Below are positions 15,400 to 50,640 of a DNA stretch of 59,840 bases, piece after piece. Within the stretch, counting starts at the first letter, position 1, and each line of letters starts with the position of its first letter. Location: the NCBI GenBank assembly GCA_003427395.1, contig BFEA01000004.1, positions 6,681,158 through 6,740,997 on the forward strand, written 5' to 3'. The translations under genes and the position numbers were made by a program. The stretch comes from Chara braunii (taxonomy: Eukaryota; Plantae; Charophyceae). The notes beneath the pieces are model-generated. The model had not been told where the DNA came from. It saw only the letters and a list, made by a program, of their open reading frames with translations, and made no database searches.

Positions 15400-15900
15400 C
15401 TCCCTTCGCTATCCATCCATCATAACATTATGTCTCATTCTCTATCCGTTCATCATCCTCTCTATCTATCCATAGTACTAAATATCCTATCTTATCTATT
15501 TATGTACCCATCCATAATATCCTTTTTCTTATAATATCCAATCCTATCCAATCTTATCCATTTTCATAATATCCAATCTTATCCAATCTTATCCATCCAT
15601 AATATCCAATCCTATCCAATCTTATCCATCCATAATTATCCAATTTTATCCAATCTTATCCAATCTTATCCATCCATAATATGCAATCCTATCCAATCTT
15701 ATCCAGTCTTATCCATCCATCCATATCTTATTTTATCTTATCCTATCTTATCCAATCTTTCTTCTATCTTATCCAATCTTTATTCTATCTATCTTATCCA
15801 ATCTTTATTCTATTGCATCCAATCTTTATTCGATATTATCTTATCCACTTTTATCCATTCGTATTTCCAATGTTAGATACTCCATCCATCCGTTCATCGC
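15400..15900 (+). repeat. Intronic (ATCCA/ATCTT)n low-complexity array
   Basis: Direct inspection; lies upstream of the exon 2 acceptor. Confidence 0.75.
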
Positions 15901-19005: not shown

Positions 19006-19999
19006 GACCTATTGACGGTGCGGAATAACGGAATGATAACCACCCGTCGCCCCGAGAAAGTTTGTGTGTGGGGGGGGGGGGGGGGGGGGGGGTATATACA
19101 GTCGACCTGACGACGACCTGCAGATCTAGGTCCGGGGTCTGTAGGTGGTCCAGAGGTTAGACCTGGTTCAGTCTCCTTTGTCTCATTCGCCTGGCCTGCG
19201 GTTTGCAATATGATGTAGCCTGCAGCAGCCCCCCGTTCTGTCAGCCGTTGATCATATCCACACACAGCGAAACTGACGACCATGTTCAGATGCCCCCCGT
19301 TCTGTCAGCCGTTCCAGGATTTTTTTCTTCTTCTTAGCTGGTCCAGAGTTTGCACCTGGTGCAGACTTCTTTGGCTCTTTGACCTGCGCCGGGATTGGGA
19401 GCAGAAGTTTGTCATAATAGCCCATCTTCTCAGCGGGGGAAAAGCATGGCCGGTGAAGAGGGAGGGAGTAGGAGGGGGGCCCTCTCTCTCGATCGGGATG
19501 ATAGGGAGGCTTGTCCCTTGGCCCATCGGGGACAGGGGCTTCATGTTCCGCTGGACCTGGGCTGCTGGCCATGCCCTTCCAGACCTGCTGGCTCGACGGG
19601 ATAGGGTGGTTGCCTCTCTGTCGTTCTTCTCCCACGCCATCCGACATGATTGCCCTGCGGTCACACGTTGGCCTGACACGTCATCAGTGTGAAGGCCATA
19701 ACCCTGGTTGAAGAGAAGGGGGCTCATGGTTAGCGGCCCAGGATAGTGAGATGAAGCGAAGCTGTGCCGACGATCGACACGTGTCGTTGTACCGCAGCTC
19801 TTGAGGTTGCTTGTCTGAGGATAGCGCTCTTGCGCGCTGCTACTTTACTCTGGCCGGTGGCAATCACCGTCGTTTTGTGTGTGCATGTTTACCTTCCACG
19901 TCCGTTTTTACGTCCATTTTTTGGACGAAGGTCCTACGTCATCTTTAAGTTTATATAGTTTTTGTGAGTGCGCTTGCGGTACTAGAAGGGCCACGTTCT

Positions 20000-20066
20000 G
20001 CCCCTTGGGACATCCGTTGAAATTGGAACGATACAGAGAAGGAAGATTAGCATGGCCCCTGCGCAA
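20000..20066 (+). pseudogene. U6: U6 snRNA 3'-truncated retrocopy with poly(A)
   Basis: gggacatccgttgaaattggaacgatacagagaag(gaag)attagcatggcccctgcgcaa matches the 5' two-thirds of plant U6. An A-rich tail follows immediately. Confidence 0.88.
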
Positions 20067-20177
20067 AAAAAAAAAAAAGAAAGAGAGAAAAAAAAGGGCC
20101 TCGTTCATTCTCATTTTGCACAGTGTAGGGCATACGCACACTACCGGTAGGAGATCATTCTCATTTTGCACAGTTTA

Positions 20178-36431: not shown

Positions 36432-37604
36432 ATGGGCGACCGAAGAGACTACGACCGTAGGAGGACCAGGTCCGGAAGTGAAGAGAGAGTGAATAGCAGG
36501 GGTTCCGACCGTCAGTATGACCGAGGAGGCGAGCGTTTCTATAGGCGATCTCCCCCAAGATGCTTCTCTTGTGGAGAACGTGGTCACTATGCAAATCAGT
36601 GTCGGAACAACAGACCTGCGACCGAGAGCCGCCCGTCGACATCGCATGACGTACAAAGAGGCGGATCAACATCACCAAGAAGGGAGGGAACGAAGAACGC
36701 GAGCGGATCATCATCCCAGGATTCGGACCTGCGACAGCAACTGGAGGAACTTACTAAGAGCCTGGCTGGTATGTCTGAGTTCGTCCAATCTGAGAAATTG
36801 AAGAAGGCGGAGGAGGAGAAAGCGAAGAAAGAGGTGGAGGAGGAGGAACAAAGACTAGCGGCTGAGAAGTTGGAGCAGCAAAGAAAGGAACGTAGAAGAA
36901 TGGAAAAGATACGTAAGGAGAATGAAAGATTGGCGGAGATTGGCAAGAAGGTGGAGCTCCAGATCGCAATCAAGACGAGTGAGTTCTTCGACCGGGTTGA
37001 AGCAAGTTTGGGACCTGCGTTGACACTAGCCCGTAAGGCGAAGGGTAAGAAACAAGTGGTTCACGTATTTGACCCTGAACCAAGTTCGGGGAAGGACAGC
37101 GACAGCAGTGCAACAAAAGAGATCCGAGCCAAGACCGGGCGCCTGGCGATTAACGAGAAGTGGAAACGTGGTCCTGAACCAGAGTTCGAGGACAGCCCTC
37201 CGATGCTGACACCTGGAAAGCGAACACCGGGAATACCGAAAGAGAAGGCCACTACAGGAGGCACTCGACGTTCCAGATCTAAGGCGAAAGTTAAGACGAA
37301 GTTGTCACCATACGTTGAGAAGTTGAAGAAGACCCCCGGTCAACCAAGTACAGTGGCGAAGTTGAGGTTTCACAACCAAGCCATGGAGGAACTTCGTGGT
37401 ATGGATGCGCAAGAATTGCAAGCGATCTGCAAAAGTGAAGGACTGGCATACAATGACAAAATTGATGCCATTTTTGACATCGCAAGCTACCGTACAAGAA
37501 AGGCCTTCAGAGAAGTGGAGCCGGTCGACCTATTTGGCCAGATGAGCCGGAATGAAGATGATTCTACATCGCTTGAAGACGAGGATCAAGACCAGGACGC
37601 TTGA
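36432..37604 (+). CDS. PLE ORF1: Gag-like nucleic-acid-binding protein, 390 aa (CCHC knuckle, coiled coil, SAP-like motif)
   Basis: Uninterrupted ORF from ATG 36432. CFSCGERGHYANQC at 36561-36602, an E/K-rich coiled-coil segment, and EELRGMDAQELQAICKSEGL near the C-terminus. Confidence 0.8.
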   Translation: MGDRRDYDRRRTRSGSEERVNSRGSDRQYDRGGERFYRRSPPRCFSCGERGHYANQCRNNRPATESRPSTSHDVQRGGSTSPRREGTKNASGSSSQDSDLRQQLEELTKSLAGMSEFVQSEKLKKAEEEKAKKEVEEEEQRLAAEKLEQQRKERRRMEKIRKENERLAEIGKKVELQIAIKTSEFFDRVEASLGPALTLARKAKGKKQVVHVFDPEPSSGKDSDSSATKEIRAKTGRLAINEKWKRGPEPEFEDSPPMLTPGKRTPGIPKEKATTGGTRRSRSKAKVKTKLSPYVEKLKKTPGQPSTVAKLRFHNQAMEELRGMDAQELQAICKSEGLAYNDKIDAIFDIASYRTRKAFREVEPVDLFGQMSRNEDDSTSLEDEDQDQDA

Positions 37605-40465
37605 TGCGTTTACGGAGCTGGAGAGATATGGCGCATCGTCCGGCTGTTGACGAGACAACGTTGCCCAGAGAAACACGTGGATACTAAGGCAGAGGAACTA
37701 CTTCGTTTGTGCATTCTACTACTATCTCTGAGGGGTGAAATCCGATGGACGAAGAAGATTGTGGAGTCCTGGCGAAGACTGTACGAATCGCATGGGATTG
37801 GATTCTTGAATTTGAAAGGTTGTGTGTACGTAGTTGTTTCACCATTCTGTAAGTTGCAGTACGTAGGTAAAACCACGCGGAACATTGATGTGCGCTGGCG
37901 TGAGCATTTGTCTGCATGTCGGAGTAAGAAGCAGTCACACTTCCATCGATGGCTTTGCACATTTGGGTTGGGTAATTACGTGCTGCTACCTGTTGATTTC
38001 GCCCAGAATGAGGTGCTTCTGGAGCTCGAAGCTGTTTATATTAAGCAATGGTCTCCGTTCCTCAATACCAGCGGATGTAAGCGGAACAACCAAGGTTGGG
38101 GTAAGCGACGTCTGGGTAAGAAAGAAAGGAGTGATAAAGTGGGCGGAAGTATACCTCGAGATTGCCGTGTCATCCGCTTTCGATCTGATGAGGAGGCATT
38201 TTCGCTCAATCTCGGGGAAATCCTGGCAACCAAGGATAAGGCCGGTAGCAGAAGATTCGTGATTGAATCGAGTGGTGGTACACCTGGGCGCATGGATGGA
38301 AGGCAATTCGTCGAAAGTTTGGTGAATCTTCTGTGAAGACTGTTGCTGGTATCGTACAACTGAAGCGCTGCAAGAACCTCTTTGAGATAGTTGGAGAAGT
38401 GCAAATCGAATACCTCCGTGTATGGAAATCGAAGGGTGGCTATCTTAAACAAGTATTGTTTCAAATCTTGAGGAACCCAGGTAAGCTATCTGATGTTTAC
38501 TCCTGGGGACTGAAGTCGATGATTAGAGTGTATAATACCATCAAAGATTTTCATAGAAAATCCACATGTAAGTACCTGAGACATTTAGTATCTCGTGTGG
38601 TCCGAGATAGGTTTGGTTTGAGTTTGTCAGCAGATCTTGTCATTCGAGTGAGGTTTGACGATCGGGTTCGACTCGTAGAACTTAGAAAGATAATCAATGA
38701 TGGGATTATGGAGTGTGATTTACCTTGCTGTTTTCGGAAGCGTGCGCGGGAGAAAGTCCGCATAGTCTGGGTTAAGAACCAGTCTGTGGGTGACATTATC
38801 CATAATCAGAGAGCCTTTGCCTCTCGAGAGATTTTGACATGTACATGTGCAGGGTTGACCTTCCCTAGATCGGGAGGTCACGTATGCTTCCGTTTAAGTC
38901 TGGGTGGGCCGCACCACCATATATTAGCGAACGCAAATGATATTCCTCGCTCTGAGGTGACAAACCGTGTTGACTTGCTTCAGCGTGAAGTTATCGCGAG
39001 ATTTTAGACATGGTATAACCTCAAGGGCCCTTGCCCTAGGATCTCTAAGGACCGTTTGTCTGTGTGCGTTGTAGCTACTAGCGATAGCGCGAGTAAGTTG
39101 CGATTGGCGGATGTGACTCGTGTGAAGGAAAAGCTGGATGGTCTCGTCCTGACACCACTTGACAGAAATCCCGGCGATACTTTGGTGATGTGCCCAGCAT
39201 CATACTATTCGGCGATGATGAGCACTTTTGTAACCAGTCCAGGTTACCGTGTAGTTCAATCTCCTGCAGAGCAAGTGCCGAGAGAGATCAAGGAAGATAT
39301 GACTGACAATGGTTTGAAGAAATTCGTCCGTTGGGACCAGAAGGGTAGATTTGGTGAGTCTTATGTGTTACCAAAGCACAAGGACACGGAACGATTTAGA
39401 CCAATTTGCCCAACGTTTAACGAGCCAATGGTTCGTACAGGAAGGTTGGTTGCGAAAGGGCTTAACCATCTACTGTTCCAGCTACCCATTGACTGACATT
39501 TCAACCTGCAAGCTGTGTCACATCTAGCAGGAAGATTGCAGCGGATTAACAGGAAGATTGGGAAGTTGACGCATGCATCTGAGATTGAATCCGGATCGTA
39601 TGATATTAAAGAAATGTTTAGTAGACTTCCTCATTGTGAAATCTTGGAGGCTGTCAATTGGATTGTTAACCACTATCGGGACAAGGGGAAATCTTTCGTC
39701 AGGGTGAACACAAGGGGTAAGGGAGTGAGTTTTGGGGTCACTACCGGTGCTGACCACTGGAGACGCTTAGATCTGGGGGACATCATGAAGTTCGTCCGCT
39801 TGGAATTGAGTCACACTTACACGTATGCTACAGGGGTGCTGTTAAGACAGGTAATAGGCATCCCCATGGGCAAGAGTACTAGCCCTCCCCTCACGTGCAT
39901 CATGTGCGCTTTGGCAGAGTGTAAGTTCTTGAACAGTATCGGGCGTTACAAGAAGCAGGTTTTTGGTTTGAGACTGATTGATGATGTCATCCTGATCACT
40001 GCGTCCTTACAGGAGAGAGTTCGAGAAGAAATTGTACGGAGATTTGAGCACTGCTACCCGGAGACACTGACACTGAAAAGGACTGATTCCGGTGATGGTA
40101 TTTTACAGTTCTTGGGATGTGAAGTCCGTACATCCCAGAGGAACCCTTTCCTTGGATGTGTTCAGCTAACAAAGAACGAAGAAACTATCTGGACGGAAGA
40201 AAAGTTGGTGTTCCAGAATGGTCAGTCTTAATCGGCCTGGGGGAGCAAACAGCAAAAGAACGCTATTACCGGAAGCCATCTGCACCGGATCAATCAGAAC
40301 ACGACTGTCCGGTCGGAGATCCCGATGCGTGTCCTGACGGTAAAGAGAGAACTCCGTTTGAAAGGTTTTCCTCCTGACTGTTTTGAGAGGGTTTTGAAGA
40401 AGTTCGTTGTGGGGAAAGATGAGGTGTGGAAGCAGACTGTGAAACTGCTTACTTCTTCGTCTTGA
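37605..40465 (+). pseudogene. PLE ORF2: GIY-YIG endonuclease, CxC linker and reverse transcriptase (1 frameshift, 3 premature stops)
   Basis: EN: CVYVVVSPFCKLQYVGKT..R..EH..E..N. CTC at 38840-38848. RT: YVLPKHKD, RFRPI, YDIKEMF, QVIGIPMGKSTSP, RLIDD, FLG. Frameshift near 38280; stops ending at 39007, 39496 and 40231. Confidence 0.88.
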
Positions 40466-41445
40466 TGAAGCTCCTTACCATCAAGTGTTATCTCACCTGC
40501 ACAGTGAGTCTGACAGAGAAGACCTGGACAGGATACCTGTCATGTCTAAGTTGGTACAGGTTATTTCCCTTCTTTTTCTCAGCCCGTAAGGTGAGGTGCA
40601 GACGGTTTCGGTGATGCACGACAACAGTATCCATCGGGAGAACTTGTGTAAATTAGATATCTGGGAATTGAACAGAGATATGTGTGTGCGTATGGCATCT
40701 ACTTAGTTTACCAGGTGAGGTCTGTACGGTTACTTCTGTTTGTAAGGACAGGTTGCCCGGGATGCGTTCAGAAAGTATCTGGCAGGGTAATTAGACAGGG
40801 TAAGTACGTTTTGGTTTTGTTTTTGTTTGGAAAAAAACAGTCTATCAGTGATGCGCTCAGAGAGCACTGGACTGGGTTTGTTTCGTTCCGGAAAGAACGG
40901 ATTGTGGATGATGCTTTCGTAAGGCATTGGACATGGTTTTGAAGTTGTCGGCTACGTTGTTGCTAGGCTTCGGTAACTAATCTATTCCGGTGCTTTCTGA
41001 CTGTTTGGTTCGGTGGATAGATAGATAGGGCACCTGTTTCTGTGGGTTAGAAGGCCCTGTGATTTTTTGAGATACGTATACGGTACCAGCACCAGGTATT
41101 TTGGTACCCGGTACTGATATCGCGACAGGAACGTACGATAGAGCCTTTGGCTATAAGACGATAATCGCCCGGGTGGGCCTGTGTGCTTTTTCGATAGGAT
41201 GTGTATATTTTTTTTCGAGTGCGTAGGCTATATGGTAGGCTATGTAGTTAGCTCTTCTGGACTATCGTGGGTTACGGTTCAGGTAATCCGACTACATCAC
41301 TAAGGATAAAGAGGATTAGGTACAGATCAGTTGACCTCTTCAGGACTGACGGGACTGGAAGCTAAGGTCATTTCGGAGTGAGTGTAGCCGAAGGTACGGA
41401 AGTGGGAAGGAAGGAAGGAGGGTTTTGATTGAGGGAGAAGTAGGT

Positions 41446-41502
41446 GGACACCCCCTGATGAAGGCAACGTGGCTGTTGCCGAAACGCGGCGTCGGGGATG
41501 CC
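41446..41502 (+). ncRNA. Minimal type I hammerhead ribozyme
   Basis: cccc-CTGATGA-a-ggcaac(gtggct)gttgcc-GAAA-cgc g gcg-TC-gggg. Complete catalytic core, 6-bp stem II, short stem III, stem I cccc/gggg. Predicted cleavage after GUC at 41493. Confidence 0.85.
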
Positions 41503-41534
41503 GTTCCTGAATCGTTTAATATTTTCAAGCGTAA

Positions 41535-41657
41535 TGCTTTGAGTGTTAATACGATTTTGAAGTTGACTACATGTACTGTGTTTGCGTGAATTGACGCTAC
41601 ATGAATTCACGCTGACTTTGTTTGATTCTTCTCACATACTCTTGTATCATTCAACTT
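41535..41657 (+). repeat. PLE 3' pseudo-LTR (direct repeat copy 2)
   Basis: Near-identical to 36177-36303. Confidence 0.9.
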
Positions 41658-41705
41658 CAACTGTTATATCATACGAGGACTAAAAAGGTAACTCAAACAC
41701 ACAAC

Positions 41706-43270
41706 TTTTTTTTTTTTTTTTTTTTTTTTTGGGACAAAAGCTCCAATCTATTTGTGGGGAGCAGCATGTGCTGGGAACCGGGCCCAGCACAAAACTTAAA
41801 AACTTCACAGTGAAAAAAAGCAGAAAAAAGCAACCTTGGATATTGTCCCACTGGCGAATCCACTGTAAAAAGATCCGGGAAAGCTCCCCATCTGCAACCA
41901 AACCATTTAGGGCTTTGGCTGTACAACCCTGTTTTTGCACTTTGTACTCCCAGTCTGCCAAGACAACTTGCTTTATAGCGTACTTGATTTCTGCCCTCAC
42001 CATTGGGGGTGTAAACTGTTCTCCCCTTCTCAAAGTAGCATTCCGAAGATTCCATATCGTCCATACAATGGCAGCTCAAATAGTTTCTTCTTCTGCATGC
42101 CATGGGCCAAATGATCAGGGGACGATCTTCTTCTGGAAGCCAACCCCATCAGCACAAACTGATCGTCCCAGTGAGCAGCTGGCGCTGGGACAGGGATGTT
42201 GGACTGTCTCCACCACTCCCAGAACGGTCTAGATATTTCACAAAGTAAGAGAAGGTGATGGATGTCCTCCATTCGTATTCCCCGACAAAGTCTGCATTCT
42301 GGACTAGCCTTTTCCGTTCTTCTTGCACACCAAGAAGCAACAGGCAATGCTTGATGCTTTATCAACCTGAGCAAACTTGTGCATTTACTTACTGTCAGTT
42401 CCAGCAACTGTTTCCAAAAACCTGGCAGTGCTTGAACCAGTCTTGTCAGTGAGTCTGTTACCCATCCCCTTGCCATTCATATTCTTCCCACTACCCAGTT
42501 TACATCCACTTCCGGTATTGACTTCAGATAGCCCAACATAGTTGTGTAACTATCATCGAGCGAGATCAGCAAGTTGATTTCTTCGGGTGTGTCCAGGCCC
42601 AGTCCCTCGGGTCGACCCGTAAATAGTAAGCTGCTAGCGTCCCTTGTACAAAATGATTCGACTGCTGCTCCATCATACTTCTCGACTCTCCAAATCAGCT
42701 CCTTTTCCTGATGGTCCTTGTGTTTATACCGCATGCCCATCACAGGCACCACCCCCCGACTCATTGTTTGAAGCCAGTCCTGCGGTATAGCCTGTTGCAA
42801 TTGGTCCAAGTGTTGACTTTGGTGCCACAGTCCGGTCAGTTTGGGGTGAGGGTGTGAATAGGTCTCCAACCCGCCGTTGTTACATCCCATAATATGTCAG
42901 CAAGGGTACCTATCCCTCAACTCATCCATCATGATGCATTCCCAAACTTCCCCAGGGCCAAAACATCCAAATGGAAATCCCTCCGAAGTCAAAATCCGAG
43001 GGTTGTTGAACAGGGGTTGGGCAAGTATTTGTTCAGTAATCATCGGTTGGGGTTGCGGCTGGGGACACCTCTTTCTCCATGTCTTCAGTATGGCTGCGGC
43101 AGATGCCCGGCAACAATCGTTTCCTAAGGTAGTCCTGACTCAACGCAGCTAGCCACACACAACAGTAATCTTCCCATTCCCATTCGGAGAGTAGGACAGT
43201 TTCAGCCAGTTGACGCCATGGGGCGAAAGAGGGTTCTAAGATCGCCCATGGGATCCACCTGGAAAGCAAG
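41706..43270 (-). mobile_element. L1/Tx1-like non-LTR retrotransposon 3' fragment (ORF2 C-terminus, zf-RVT-like) with structured tail and poly(A)
   Basis: LPVASW...CRLC....EDIHHLLLLC..W and WTIWNLRN motifs across frameshifts. Followed on the minus strand by the two-hairpin element (41740-41788) and a long A run. Confidence 0.75.
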
Positions 43271-46035: not shown

Positions 46036-49000
46036 CCCCCCCCCCCCTTCCTTGTGAAAGCCCTTTTATAAGGTCACTATCCCAGCAGTGGTAAGAGAAC
46101 CACCGGAATTGAGGCATTGGTTGTTGGGCTGCTCCATCATCGGCTTTCAGTGGAGTTTGAGCTTAGGTTTGCGTTTCAACAATTAATGCGCGTACCAACT
46201 GAACCTGGCTACAGTCCCAATGTAGGACTTCGCTACACGGGTCGTCCCAAGTGATAACAACGGCTTACGGGCGCACCAGCTAAGCTAAGCCCATCAGCCT
46301 CACCATTGGTCTCCGAACCGGTACCGAGAATTAAAATAGTCAAAAAAAAAAAACAAAAAAAAAACGACGGTACTTAAGAAAAAAAAAGAGGGGGGGAATT
46401 GCTGGTACCCCCTTGACCCCATTGACTGGGCCCGTGCCTGGGACCGACAAGCAAAACTAAGGGGGATAGTCCCAACCCCTTGGTCCTTGGTACGTTGGCA
46501 GTGCTCCTTCGCCCCTTCATCGTCGGCTGCTAGCCTAGATCCCTATACCTACGATTTGTAAGTCAAGTGTTGTAACCAATAGTGCTTAGCCCAAGATTGA
46601 TTTTAGCAATCACGCAATTCCATATAGACAGGTACCATGCGGCGCGTTGACCTACCGTGACACACCAAGGGTCACATCCTTCCCTACCAGTTGAACCCAC
46701 GACCACCAAGCTCCTTCATCTACCTTGCGGAGGCCTGATCCATGTCTTACTCCACCATTCACTCCCCTACCACACAAACGTTGTGCGGCCGTTAAAACCA
46801 ACCTCCGTACGAGCGAACGCACACCACGGTTATATGTACCGACCAACGGAAAAAGTCGCAGTCCTAATTTAATCGAAATCAAAAAGTTGGTTGGCAGATG
46901 CACAAACACTATAACATCAATAAGAAACATCACACGCGCCTCAAAACAGCGCGCCCACGCATTCTCACCTTTTCCCTTGAACACACAGTCGATCACAAAA
47001 AGAAACCTAGCCGCGACTCACACGGCGCACGCAACTTTCGACCCTAAATTTTTAATCAATACTCTTTTTTTGTCACTCGTAAAAAACAGGGCGGATACCC
47101 TTGTAAGGGTATGCGCACTGACACCGCGTCAAACTAGGAACTAGGCCTACTTGTATTGGCATCGGGTTCCTTCGAACAGGTACCAGTTCTTGCCTATCCA
47201 TTCCCAACACATTCAAGACCTGAAAAAGTACAGAAACAAAGTAACAAAATCATGACCCTATGGGCCTACGCTATCTACCGGGAAACACTATGAAAACCGA
47301 GCTCAAAGCATTTAACAAGTCTCGGGTTCAATTCCCGTCTAGCAAAAAAAACAAAACAGAAGAAGGGCATTTCCGAAAGTACCGGAATCATGACCCTACG
47401 CTATTTGCCGAAAAACACTGAAAACCAGGCTCAAAGACATTCGACAAGTTTTGGGTTCGATACCCCCGAGGCAAACACAACAAAGATCCCTGTACGAATG
47501 TGAGCAAAAAAAAAAAACTAACCATGCATTTATCAGTCGGTCGCACTACAACAACTCGGTAAAACGACAATCTGACCTAACACACCACATGTGACAAGAG
47601 GTCAACAGTCCTTCCTCAGATCGCATCCTCTCTCTTTGCAAATCGGCGAAGCACAGGAAGGAAGAAACGACGAGAGAAGTCTTTCAGTCTTAGTTCTTTC
47701 ATTAGACAGATCACTCATGAAGGGATTTCCGAACGGATCGATGTACTTCGATCTATCCGGTGTAGGTAACTCCCTACGATAGATCACTCTTCTGCCTCTT
47801 GCAGCCCCATGATAGATAAGACTGCCCCTTTTGAATCTCAAGTCGATCCTCCTTCCACATACTTTCCTCGTTCTTAGTCATTTGGACACAACCTATATAA
47901 AGGTACGTACTGTCAGTACATACGTGACATCCCAAAAAATCAAAGCTGTCAGAACCGTCGTCCATCCGTTTGAGGCACAAGTCATCTGGATAACAAACTT
48001 CGAAGCATCGTTGTATCTCCGTCTTCACTACATTTGAGATGTCGAAGGCGAACATAGCGACGTCATCAATCAATCTAATGCCGAAGATCTTTGCTTTCCA
48101 TCTCCCCAGGATCGCAAGAAAACGATACTCAGCATGTGCACACATGATGCACGCCAAAGGAGGACTTGATTTTCCCCATTGGGATGCCAACGTTCTGCTT
48201 CAGTAGAATCCGAGTGGCATATGTGTAACAGTGTAAGTATGTAGGAGTTCAATCTCCAAGAATCGCAAAATATCGCGGAGATTGATCCTCCTCCAGTGGT
48301 CATCACCTGTAGTGAGCCCGAATGTACTTCCTCTCCCTCTGGTATTCACCCTCACGATCTCCCTCCCTTTTCTTATGTGATGGGTGATGATCCAATTCAC
48401 TGCTTGCATGATGTCAGTGTGGGGTAGTCTATTGAACATAATATCGTACGACATACCTCACACATCAGATCGACTACCCATAACCTTGCTATTAATTTTC
48501 CTCAATCGATCCGCCAAATGTGAAAGAACATACAAATTAAAATGCCAAATTGAATCACATGGTAGTGAAAACAGCAGGTGGTTCAAACCCTTGGCCGTCA
48601 GTCTGCCTCTCCATACAGTCGGCTCTCCGAAGGTAGGATAAATTGGTATGAACTTGATAACATCATTTTGCTTCGGTAACACGTATGTCGCTCCTAAATA
48701 TCCCCTGTTATCCCATCTGGCCATCTTTCCCAGACCACTGCCATACATCTCCTCCGTCACCTCTTGCAAAACCCACTCTTCAAAGTTCAACATCTCACTG
48801 TAACCGCCATTCCTCACAAAGGTCGGCATCATAGCCTCGAAGTACACCTTAGGGCACAATACCAGGGTTTGCCCTGGATTGCGGTCCATAGGGGTACACA
48901 CCAAGCCACTCAGGCGTTTCTTCAACCTCAGAACGTCATCAACTGCGATGTAAGCATCCGGTTCTTCCTTTCGGCACATGAAACACCTACCTAAGTCCTC

Positions 49001-50640
49001 CTTCTCAATGCATATCTACTTCCGTCGGTAGTTACTCCATTGGTCAAAGTTGGTCACCACCTCGTGTCTGAGCAAATCAATCCTACTACCAAATTCATGA
49101 ATAGGAGTATTCCTTGCATTGAGAAGTAATGGTTGCGCGTCGCACAAGGTGTTGAGACGGAAGCACATTTGAGCTACCACACGTGGGAAGGATAAGCCTG
49201 CGCAATTGCAGGTTAGCACATCGCATGCGGCATACTGCCGCTGGTTGTGCAAGATGTCCCCAACAGACTGTTTTCTGGTCCAGACTGGCGGACTTACTTA
49301 CGTGCATGTGCCTTAAAGCAAGCCGGCAAATCACATTCCATCACTAAATCATTAATCACTTTCCTCAACTCAGACAGTCGTATGCGGTTATCAAATTTTG
49401 CACGTACGACGAGGTAAGCACTTAGACTCAATTCAAACCTCTTGTTGAACACGCCTTGCAGCAAACGTCGCAGGTATTTCCGAGTCGATTTTCGGCTAAA
49501 ATCTGTATTAACTCCATATAACCGTAGTACTGATCTCATGCTCCAAGAGTAGATTTCATTAAGCATCCTAGTGGTTTTCAAAATGCCAATCAAGACCAAG
49601 TTTTAACGCACGACATCGGGGTTTCCAAACTACCAGGTGCACAATTTTGAAACACCCCCCTCCTTCAATCAGTCCTTTAGTGTTGTTCAGTAGAACTTCA
49701 CGTCTGTCAAACTTGACTCACCAAAAACTTTCCTAACCTTCTTCCAAGGAGTGCACCATGTGTTCGCTCCATCAGTCCGTAAATCAAAACGTGTGCATCC
49801 TCTAGAGTCTAGAGGAGTAGTTTTCAAGAAAATCCTCGATATTGACTAAGTCACCTTCCTGCTCCATACTTAAGAAGTTAATATGTCGCACCTCCTTGTA
49901 CGGTTTTCCCGGTTGAGCCTGAGGGTTCTTCTTCCTTCGTTCCCTTGCCCCATTCCTCGTCCTTTTCTTCTTCCTATGTTTTTTCGTCACGGTGACCCGT
50001 ACGTGTTCAAAACTGGCGACCATTGCCTAATGTATGTGCTCTCCAGATTATCAATGTCAAATCCACTCATCACATCAACATGAATTAGAACATATTTGTA
50101 AGTACCGAAGCGACCAAGCCAACGATTAAAGTGCGTCTGTGCCGTGAATTTACATCCATACAAGTGCTCCTTCCAGTGTGTATCGACGTCCCGACACATC
50201 TTTCCAACATATTGCGAGCCGCAATATGGGGACACGGCTATATACACCTCATTCTTGAGGCTCAAGAACTCAAAACCATACTTCTCATACAATCTCAACC
50301 AAGACTCAACACACTTCCTATTCCAGCGGATGCATCCAGCAATGGCCAACCTCACTACCACTAATCGTAGTAGTTCCTCGATTCTACGGTTGCATTCCGT
50401 AGACTTACCTCGCAGATCCATGAAAAGGTCACAAAACCGCCAATACTCGGCAATACCAAAACCACAGCAAAGTCCGCGTCGGTGTGCGTTTCGTGGGCAG
50501 CTCCATCGGTGGACTACCTTCGAACACGACCTCGGGGCCTCTCTTCCGCTTCTCATGAATGATGAGGTTACCTGTCCTTGCCCGGATGTCCTCCGTATCA
50601 CTATTCACGAGCTCATAGTGGTGGTTGAGGAGAGTCATTA
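46036..50640 (-). mobile_element. Second, more decayed Chlamys/Naiad-type PLE of a divergent subfamily, 5' truncated
   Basis: ORF1 remnant EKRKRGPEVVFEGSPPM. EN: EVYIAVSPYCGSQYVGK..KEH..E..N. CNC at 49202-49210. RT: YVLPKQND, GKSSPPL, IRLIDD, FDFLGC. Collinear with copy 1 down to ~47570. The 3' limit is uncertain because of the gap at 46011-46035. Confidence 0.85.

Follow-up and report, generated by a model that had tools for sequence, protein, structure and literature searches.

A Minimal Hammerhead Ribozyme Motif in an N-Terminal-Endonuclease Penelope-Like Element of the Alga Chara braunii and in Its Diverged Relatives

Here, we describe a hammerhead ribozyme motif carried by a Penelope-like element (PLE) in the genome of the charophyte Chara braunii. 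The DNA under study, hereafter the window, is a stretch of 59,840 nucleotides (nt) (assembly GCA_003427395.1, contig BFEA01000004.1, positions 6,681,158 to 6,740,997 of the forward strand), for which an initial annotation had been made from the letters and their open reading frames (ORFs). We found that a type I minimal hammerhead motif lies in the 3′ part of a decayed PLE with an N-terminal endonuclease (EN), and that homologous motifs, with a covarying helix II, occupy the same position in diverged PLE families of C. braunii. We consider it probable that this is the hammerhead of a Chlamys-type (i.e., N-terminal-EN) retrotransposon corresponding to the published type Chlamys-2_cBra, to which the element was matched by description.

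The Host Element

The PLE unit spans 5354 nt, and its domains succeed one another in the order ORF1, EN, linker, and reverse transcriptase (RT) (Table 1). A GIY-YIG EN (Pfam PF01541, E = 9e-8) precedes the CxC linker motif and the RT motifs, which bears out the N-terminal-EN host proposed in the initial annotation. We compared 11 C. braunii loci (L001–L011), fetched via homologs of the element's proteins, and recovered the same domain order in nine of them and part of it in L002 and L007. Coding conservation ends near 40460, the natural family stop being the TGA at 40463, and the hammerhead lies about 1 kb further downstream, within the 3′ untranslated region (UTR) to which it had been assigned.

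The unit is accompanied by direct repeats (36175-36303 and 41533-41657; 93–96% identity), the repeat ending at ...CATTCAACTT, after which the unit starts, as judged from the alignment with L004. These are pseudo-long terminal repeats (pseudo-LTRs) of a partial tandem, the upstream one being the 5′-truncated remnant of a preceding copy; both the partial-tandem pseudo-LTRs and the 5′ truncation that characterize Chlamys elements are thus present. The partial upstream copy reaches at least 1.6 kb in L006 and at least 310 nt in L004. In the window it is reduced to 129 nt, which leaves no room for a second hammerhead.

Beyond the unit end, 48 nt may represent the PLE "tail". Such tails are 30–40 bp long (PMC8557442) and have been put down to internal initiation of reverse transcription (PMC11167929). 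The element is bordered by a run of 28 A on the left (36130-36157) and of 25 T on the right (41706-41730), and an 80-nt inverted-repeat structure resembling a miniature inverted-repeat transposable element lies just upstream (35574-36009). No target-site duplication was identified around the element.

This copy is dead. It carries a 1-nt frameshift near 38282, three premature stops (TAG at 39005-39007, TGA at 39494-39496, and TAA at 40229-40231), at the positions of which the other copies have sense codons, and a single hammerhead. The motif of the window is a well-preserved fossil and not a working part.

Anatomy of the Hammerhead Motif

The motif fits the type I topology: three helices surround a core, and it is helix I that is open-ended. 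The conserved core is complete: C3 U4 G5 A6 N7 G8 A9, G12 A13 A14, the A15.1-U16.1 pair, and H17 (41455-41461, 41481-41484, and 41492-41493). The initial annotation, whose range (41446-41502) is the motif plus 5 nt on either side, had listed the core nucleotides CUGAUGA, GAAA, and GUC, a 6-bp stem II, and a CCCC/GGGG stem I, and we found them all as listed. It had overlooked the unpaired A on the 5′ side of helix II. An extra unpaired nucleotide at this place is a variation known in other natural hammerheads (PMC4209133). Stem III also has the announced 1-nt loop; it is quasi-palindromic and unable to form a stable hairpin, as in dimer-dependent minimal hammerheads. The cleavage site put forward earlier, 41493/41494, agrees with the predicted position of C17.

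The motif is carried on the + strand, as is the host element, which confirms its sense orientation. The predicted cut site is 164 nt, and the end of helix I 160 nt, upstream of the unit end (41657). The direct repeat of the window copy begins at 41533-41535, i.e., 34–38 nt 3′ of the motif, so the distance of about 40 nt to the terminal repeat given by the initial annotation is right for this copy; it does not describe the family, where the hammerhead sits inside the pseudo-LTR. Indeed, the motif falls outside the repeat here because the upstream pseudo-LTR is truncated.

Loop 1 is not definable. An extension of helix I suggested by the minimum free energy (MFE) fold of the window motif was rejected, as it is not kept in L004, and the closed or bulged helix I that would allow loop 1–loop 2 contacts is absent.

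Table 1. Coordinates of the element, its coding features, and its hammerhead motif (window positions unless a locus is named).
Feature	Position	Strand	Remarks
Upstream pseudo-LTR	36175-36303	+	129 nt; 5′-truncated remnant of preceding partial tandem copy
Full unit of Chlamys-type PLE, decayed	36304-41657	+	5354 nt; bounds by alignment with L004
ORF1, gag-like, charged coiled-coil-like region	36432-37601	+	CCHC zinc knuckle 36561-36602
In-frame UGA, ORF1/EN-RT junction	37602-37604	+	conserved in diverged copies
EN-linker-RT reading frame	37605-40465	+	natural family stop TGA at 40463
GIY-YIG endonuclease	37821-38072	+	Pfam PF01541 match 37815-38051, E = 9e-8
CxC linker motif (CTC)	38840-38848	+	as in Chlamys clade
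LDRNPG	39158-39175	+	sequence motif
RT motif A (YDIKEMF)	39599-39619	+	sequence motif
RT motif B (GIPMGKS)	39857-39877	+	sequence motif
RT motif C (LIDDV)	39974-39988	+	sequence motif
3′ UTR upstream of hammerhead	40466-41450	+	not conserved between diverged families
Type I minimal hammerhead ribozyme motif	41451-41497	+	47 nt; predicted cut 41493/41494
Helix I	CCCC 41451-41454 with GGGG 41494-41497	+	4 bp
Core CUGAUGA	41455-41461	+	sequence reading
Unpaired A between A9 and 10.1	41462	+	sequence reading
Helix II GGCAAC/GUUGCC	41463-41468 / 41475-41480	+	6 bp, 7 including closing G-U
GAAA (GAA + A15.1)	41481-41484	+	sequence reading
Helix III ACGC-G-GCGU	41484-41492	+	1-nt loop
C17	41493	+	end of GUC; predicted cut between C41493 and G41494
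Downstream pseudo-LTR, part repeated at 5′ end of copy	41533-41657	+	direct repeat; 3′ end of unit
48 nt between unit end and T25 run	41658-41705	+	PLE "tail" extension or flank
Junction TGA in loci	L004 9728-9730; L005 11168-11170; L006 11165-11167; L007 10832-10834; L008 11162-11164; L009 11153-11155; L010 11129-11131

Database Match and Chance Expectation

The Rfam model Hammerhead_1 (RF00163) aligns over its full length at 41450-41499, with 22.4 bits and E = 0.004 for the 351 nt searched. This score is below the gathering score of the model, 34, and an Rfam scan at the gathering threshold reported no hammerhead. The score is low because of the 4-bp helix I, of the 19-nt helix II hairpin (14 nt in the model), and of the extra A. 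A gathering score is a score threshold and carries no structural criterion, and minimal PLE hammerheads typically score below that of RF00163. The consensus of this model, which covers newt satellite 2, Schistosoma Sm-alpha, and similar hammerheads, agrees with the Chara motif in helix III (GAAACGC..GCGUC) and in the core (CUGANGA).

A strict sequence pattern had a single match in the window and none in 100 shuffles. With a structural descriptor (helix I ≥ 4, helix II ≥ 6, helix III ≥ 3), only one of 300 dinucleotide shuffles gave a match, against 46 of 300 for a relaxed 3/3/3 descriptor; it is owing to its long helix II that the motif is unlikely to arise by chance. By itself, this rarity is not overwhelming, and it is the comparative evidence that decides. 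The sub-threshold Rfam score and the matching of the relaxed descriptor to 15% of the shuffled windows would both be in line with a chance match, or with a motif that comes from a different element nested within the 3′ region. Against such an origin stand, besides the rarity of strict-descriptor matches, the colinearity of the whole 3′ region with sister copies and the homologous motifs of 10 of 11 independent loci, which share the relative position and the strand of the window motif and occur in both pseudo-LTRs. Together with the conserved island in the 3′ UTR described below, these motifs effectively refute a chance or nested origin, to which we leave only a very slight probability.

No second hammerhead was found elsewhere in the window, including in a model search with filters off around the PLE remnant at 47.8–50.6 kb, and a metagenome scan with the CCCC...GGGG minimal hammerhead pattern returned 0 matches.

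Conservation of the Motif Among C. braunii Elements

We searched the stop-interrupted reading frames against proteins as separate pieces. The RT piece had three homologs (44–56% identity) and the EN piece one (85% identity), and ORF1 retrieved, besides the product of the window itself, 34 homologs, which are C. braunii proteins labeled "CCHC-type domain-containing". All these homologs come from C. braunii. An assignment to the Naiad clade was rejected: Naiads are metazoan and devoid of canonical hammerhead, and here the relatives are all from C. braunii and the hammerhead is present.

Locus L004 holds a copy of the same family, colinear with that of the window and 86% identical at the nt level over 4.3 kb. 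Several families occur among the fetched loci, with only 33–85% protein identity. The upstream pseudo-LTR of L004 is longer than that of the window and includes a hammerhead with the identical 47 nt, in a surrounding pseudo-LTR that differs by 9%. The structural descriptor detected further type I motifs, all in sense orientation, in L002, L003, L006, L008, and L010. With a covariance model built from three hammerhead copies, and counting matches at E < 0.1, we obtained 16 motifs, spread over the window and 10 of the 11 loci, of which 15 are in sense orientation. L003, L005, L006, and L008 each contain a pair of motifs 5.06–5.41 kb apart, one per pseudo-LTR, a spacing that agrees with the 5354-nt length of the unit; the first motif of each pair lies about 300–400 nt upstream of ORF1. 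Hence, the hammerhead is a property of the family, within which it is located inside the pseudo-LTR.

Between diverged families, the 3′ UTR can be aligned (tblastx and blastn against the loci) only at 41440-41515, which forms an island around the hammerhead. Conservation in this island reaches about 15 nt beyond helix I (41498-41515), and the GCC that follows GGGGA is nearly invariant; a further constrained element may therefore adjoin the hammerhead at 41498-41515.

The initial annotation would not have survived a core that varied freely among other copies. On the contrary, the core is intact in 11 of the 16 homologous motifs. In each of the other five, one core G (G5, G8, or G12) is replaced by A; these motifs sit in loci with broken reading frames (L001, L003, L004, and L006, by frame changes or internal stops), which fits decay after insertion. 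These mutated cores may also be taken as a sign that the hammerhead is a selfish passenger or a relic of the pseudo-LTR, devoid of any role for the retrotransposon or serving non-autonomous, retrozyme-like derivatives. This explanation was raised by Craig et al., as Naiads and most Chlamys thrive without hammerheads (PMC8557442), and a 2026 preprint traces animal retrozymes to PLE pseudo-LTRs. We hold it to be improbable. Indeed, besides the link between core mutations and broken reading frames, the motif keeps its position in at least six diverged families, the rest of whose 3′ UTRs cannot be aligned, which speaks for selection at the level of the element.

Two further observations concern L004 (8023-8223 and 13483-13820). 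A stretch of about 100 nt that immediately precedes the hammerhead is present as a tandem duplication in its upstream pseudo-LTR, and at the exact place where the downstream hammerhead is expected, its assembly gives way to a run of N; this illustrates how tandem structures of PLEs disturb assemblies.

Covariation and Folding

Covariation was measured on a model-based alignment of the 16 sequences, as MAFFT misplaced helix III of the diverged hammerheads. In this alignment, 96.3% of the cells form pairs, and two-sided changes occur in 20 cells, against 5.3 ± 1.7 in shuffles (0 of 500 reaching this value). The covariation score is 0.319, compared with 0.125 for shuffles and at most 0.061 with slid partners. 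Helix II contains three covarying pairs, with up to five pair types, and at least six different helix II sequences each keep the 6 bp; helix III contributes one covarying pair. The covariation across genomic copies that the initial annotation had proposed as a check is thus found in helix II and, for one pair, in helix III. Moreover, helix III remains palindromic through sequence change (ACGCGU, ACCGGU, AAGCGCGCUU, and ACGC-N-GCGU in the group of the window).

The folding energies do not favor the isolated motif. For the window motif, the monomeric hammerhead fold is computed at −14.3 kcal/mol, versus −21.7 kcal/mol for the MFE structure, in which the core is sequestered. RNAalifold, applied to the 16-sequence alignment, recovers helix II and predicts for the monomer another pairing, in which CUGA is sequestered. 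A self-duplex of helix III is computed at −12.3 kcal/mol, and the MFE of two cofolded copies at −50.5 kcal/mol versus 2 × −21.7 kcal/mol. Since the loop of helix III counts 1 nt here and 0 nt in sister families, the hairpin cannot close within one molecule.

The preference of the monomer for another fold, as well as the continuation of the conserved island to 41515, could be explained if the motif were mainly a protein-recognition or RNA-folding element, e.g., a landmark near the internal start of reverse transcription, its cleavage being protein-assisted and dispensable for transposition. The hammerhead of Poseidon PAc provides a precedent: its cleavage depends on the protein of the element, and insertion in vitro proceeds normally in catalytic mutants (PMC11167929). 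However, the invariant positions in diverged families are exactly the catalytic core and the GUC site, with the helices left to covary, and this pattern is the signature of selection for catalysis. The palindromy of helix III, kept through sequence change, would also be needless for a simple protein-binding site. We consequently regard a recognition or folding role as rather unlikely.

Proposed Mode of Action

We infer from this architecture a catalytic hammerhead that would work as a dimer in the processing of the element's transcript. A complete insertion, i.e., a partial upstream copy followed by a full one, carries two sense hammerheads one unit length apart. The active form would most likely be a double hammerhead, in which two motifs are joined through helix III, because this helix is too short to fold intramolecularly and is palindromic or nearly so. 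The partner motifs could belong to one read-through transcript, containing the upstream and the downstream pseudo-LTR, or to two separate transcripts, and a protein of the element itself might help. If both motifs were cut after C17 (41493), an RNA of unit length would be freed, with 5′-OH and 2′,3′-cyclic phosphate ends.

Several points weigh against this reading, and those on Poseidon, Naiads, and Chlamys count against such cleavage being a necessity. The minimal hammerhead ribozymes (min-HHRs) of metazoan PLEs cleave poorly in vitro (PMC4209133). The hammerhead of Poseidon of Anolis, the only PLE to have been reconstituted, requires the protein of the element, its catalytic mutants leave insertion in vitro unaffected, and RNA-seq yields no ends at its cut site (PMC11167929). 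Naiads and most Chlamys proliferate without any hammerhead (PMC8557442). As for the Chara motif, its self-cleavage is a prediction from sequence, its Rfam score is under the gathering score, and the copy in the window combines broken ORFs with a single hammerhead. Since helix I is CCCC/GGGG throughout, covariation lends it no support, which is neutral evidence. The number of pairs with any double change among the 16 related sequences, 4, is not above that of shuffles (3.4), and the covariation figures, being drawn from related sequences in an alignment fitted to the model, overstate independence and favor the structure.

Proteins and the In-Frame UGA

The zinc knuckle of ORF1 matches Pfam zf-CCHC (PF00098) with 22.3 bits, for a cut-off of 20.8. 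Conserved Cys and His residues surround the GIY-YIG motif in 10 aligned Chara EN regions (SP.CK, EH, AC, and TH.H); they may or may not correspond to the CCHH zinc-finger motif, which, like CX2-5CxxC, is absent from the EN of the Chlamys clade. Among the eight loci covering the EN–linker junction, four (L004, L005, L009, and L011) have it in one frame and the four others show a frame change at or near it.

In the RT, 79 residues separate YDIKEMF from GIPMGKS (85 from start to start), a long gap that is consistent with an insertion in the fingers, as judged without a reference alignment. The position of the DKG motif, of which the Chlamys clade has a DK(x) version, was placed by eye and reads LDRNPG (D-R-N) in the window and in the five other Chara copies compared there. 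The Pfam RVT_1 profile matches weakly and in only two of seven copies, and a sequence search of PDB with an RT profile gave no relevant match. In an AlphaFold2 model of the RT of low confidence (predicted local distance difference test of 54), the 10 best Foldseek matches in PDB are all telomerase RTs (E from 1e-4 to 1e-2, template modeling score of about 0.4), a weak, model-based indication that would fit a Penelope-like RT.

ORF1 ends on a UGA that is in frame with EN-RT. The TGA at this junction is present in eight copies, namely the window and seven loci of diverged families, and is replaced by TAG in L011. The peptide right after the UGA (..YG.DEIW..) is conserved in the frame of ORF1, and no ATG was found ahead of the GIY-YIG motif. 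Such a pattern suggests that the junction stop undergoes programmed readthrough or another recoding and does not result from decay. No conserved RNA structure was found within about 100 nt 3′ of the UGA, and an E-value scan of 40100-41750 found no selenocysteine insertion sequence (SECIS) or other known RNA in the 3′ UTR. If the UGA is recoded, this could be a readthrough in the style of retroviral gag-pol or, less likely, an insertion of selenocysteine. The in-frame UGA is a feature of the window element that is not mentioned, for Chlamys-2_cBra or otherwise, in the text of Craig et al. (PMC8557442).

The two features can be combined in a tentative model, to which we give somewhat less than an even chance: EN-RT would be made only through the recoded UGA after the gag-like ORF1, and obligate-dimer hammerheads would excise a unit-length, possibly circularizable, RNA. 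UGA recoding and dimeric hammerheads in both pseudo-LTRs may be two features that have not been described together for PLEs.

Other Features of the Window and Loci

A second Chlamys-type PLE remnant lies on the − strand of the window (47819-50605). It belongs to a different family (43–51% protein identity to the first), consists only of EN, linker, RT, and an ORF1 fragment, and is followed by no detectable hammerhead, even with filters off.

In L010, a different hammerhead variant is found 1.4 kb downstream of the first motif of that locus (15584-15634, +), with a CCCU/AGGG helix I, a GCUGCU/GGCAGC helix II, and a 10-nt perfectly palindromic helix III; it probably comes from another PLE family. 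Two type III hammerhead-like motifs, unrelated to that of the PLE, lie on the − strand in L002 (4902-4956; RF00008, 37.4 bits, below gathering) and L004 (15107-15135), and could be retrozyme-like elements.

The window also contains a match to U6 small nuclear RNA above gathering (19995-20104, +; 52.3 bits), the 3′ half of which is replaced by an A/G-rich tract, and a U6-like match just under gathering (10076-10162, −; 40.1 bits). Both are likely pseudogenes or retrocopies.

Relation to Known Systems and Significance

Canonical hammerheads are missing from N-terminal-EN PLEs except in two cases. One of these is the C. braunii type Chlamys-2_cBra, described with a canonical hammerhead at its 3′ end and an upstream zf-CCHC ORF (Craig, Yushenova, Rodriguez, and Arkhipova 2021, PMC8557442). 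The window element shares with it the host species, the N-terminal GIY-YIG, the CxC motif, the long gap between RT motifs A and B, the partial-tandem pseudo-LTRs, the hammerhead near the 3′ end, and the upstream gag-like zf-CCHC ORF. This likeness is to the published description, and the two may or may not belong to one family. A literature search for C. braunii and hammerhead returned only the article of Craig et al. Thus, the novelty implied by the initial annotation does not hold: the association was published in 2021, and the finding is confirmed but already known.

The min-HHRs of metazoan PLEs combine a long helix II with a helix I of 4–5 bp and a small, palindromic helix III, and a base is left unpaired on the 5′ side of stem II; their activity is weak and restricted to dimers or trimers (Cervera and de la Peña 2014, PMC4209133). 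The Chara motif resembles them in being of type I, with a helix II of 6–7 bp preceded by an unpaired nucleotide, a 4-bp helix I without defined loop 1, and a tiny palindromic helix III. The presence in both pseudo-LTRs that goes with min-HHRs is observed in L003, L005, L006, and L008, and not in the window copy, of which the upstream pseudo-LTR is truncated. On the other hand, its host element differs from theirs by its permuted domain order, with EN at the N-terminus, and by residing in a streptophyte alga. Hammerheads of plant (Selaginella) PLEs were reported to be canonical and not minimal (PMC4209133). Poseidon PAc of Anolis carolinensis likewise bears a hammerhead in the pseudo-LTR region and is a tested precedent; its motif overlaps the start of the ORF and its EN is C-terminal (PMC11167929).

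Our analysis adds no new kind of element. It adds comparative support for the structure, the observation that non-coding conservation in these elements is limited to the hammerhead block, and a minimal architecture like that of animal PLEs in an alga. The C. braunii families with intact paired motifs provide material for testing the function of PLE hammerheads. The covariation, the paired positions, and the conserved island independently confirm that one algal branch of the otherwise hammerhead-free N-terminal-EN PLEs carries a hammerhead under selection, which bears on the question of whether hammerheads are ancestral to PLEs or were acquired repeatedly.

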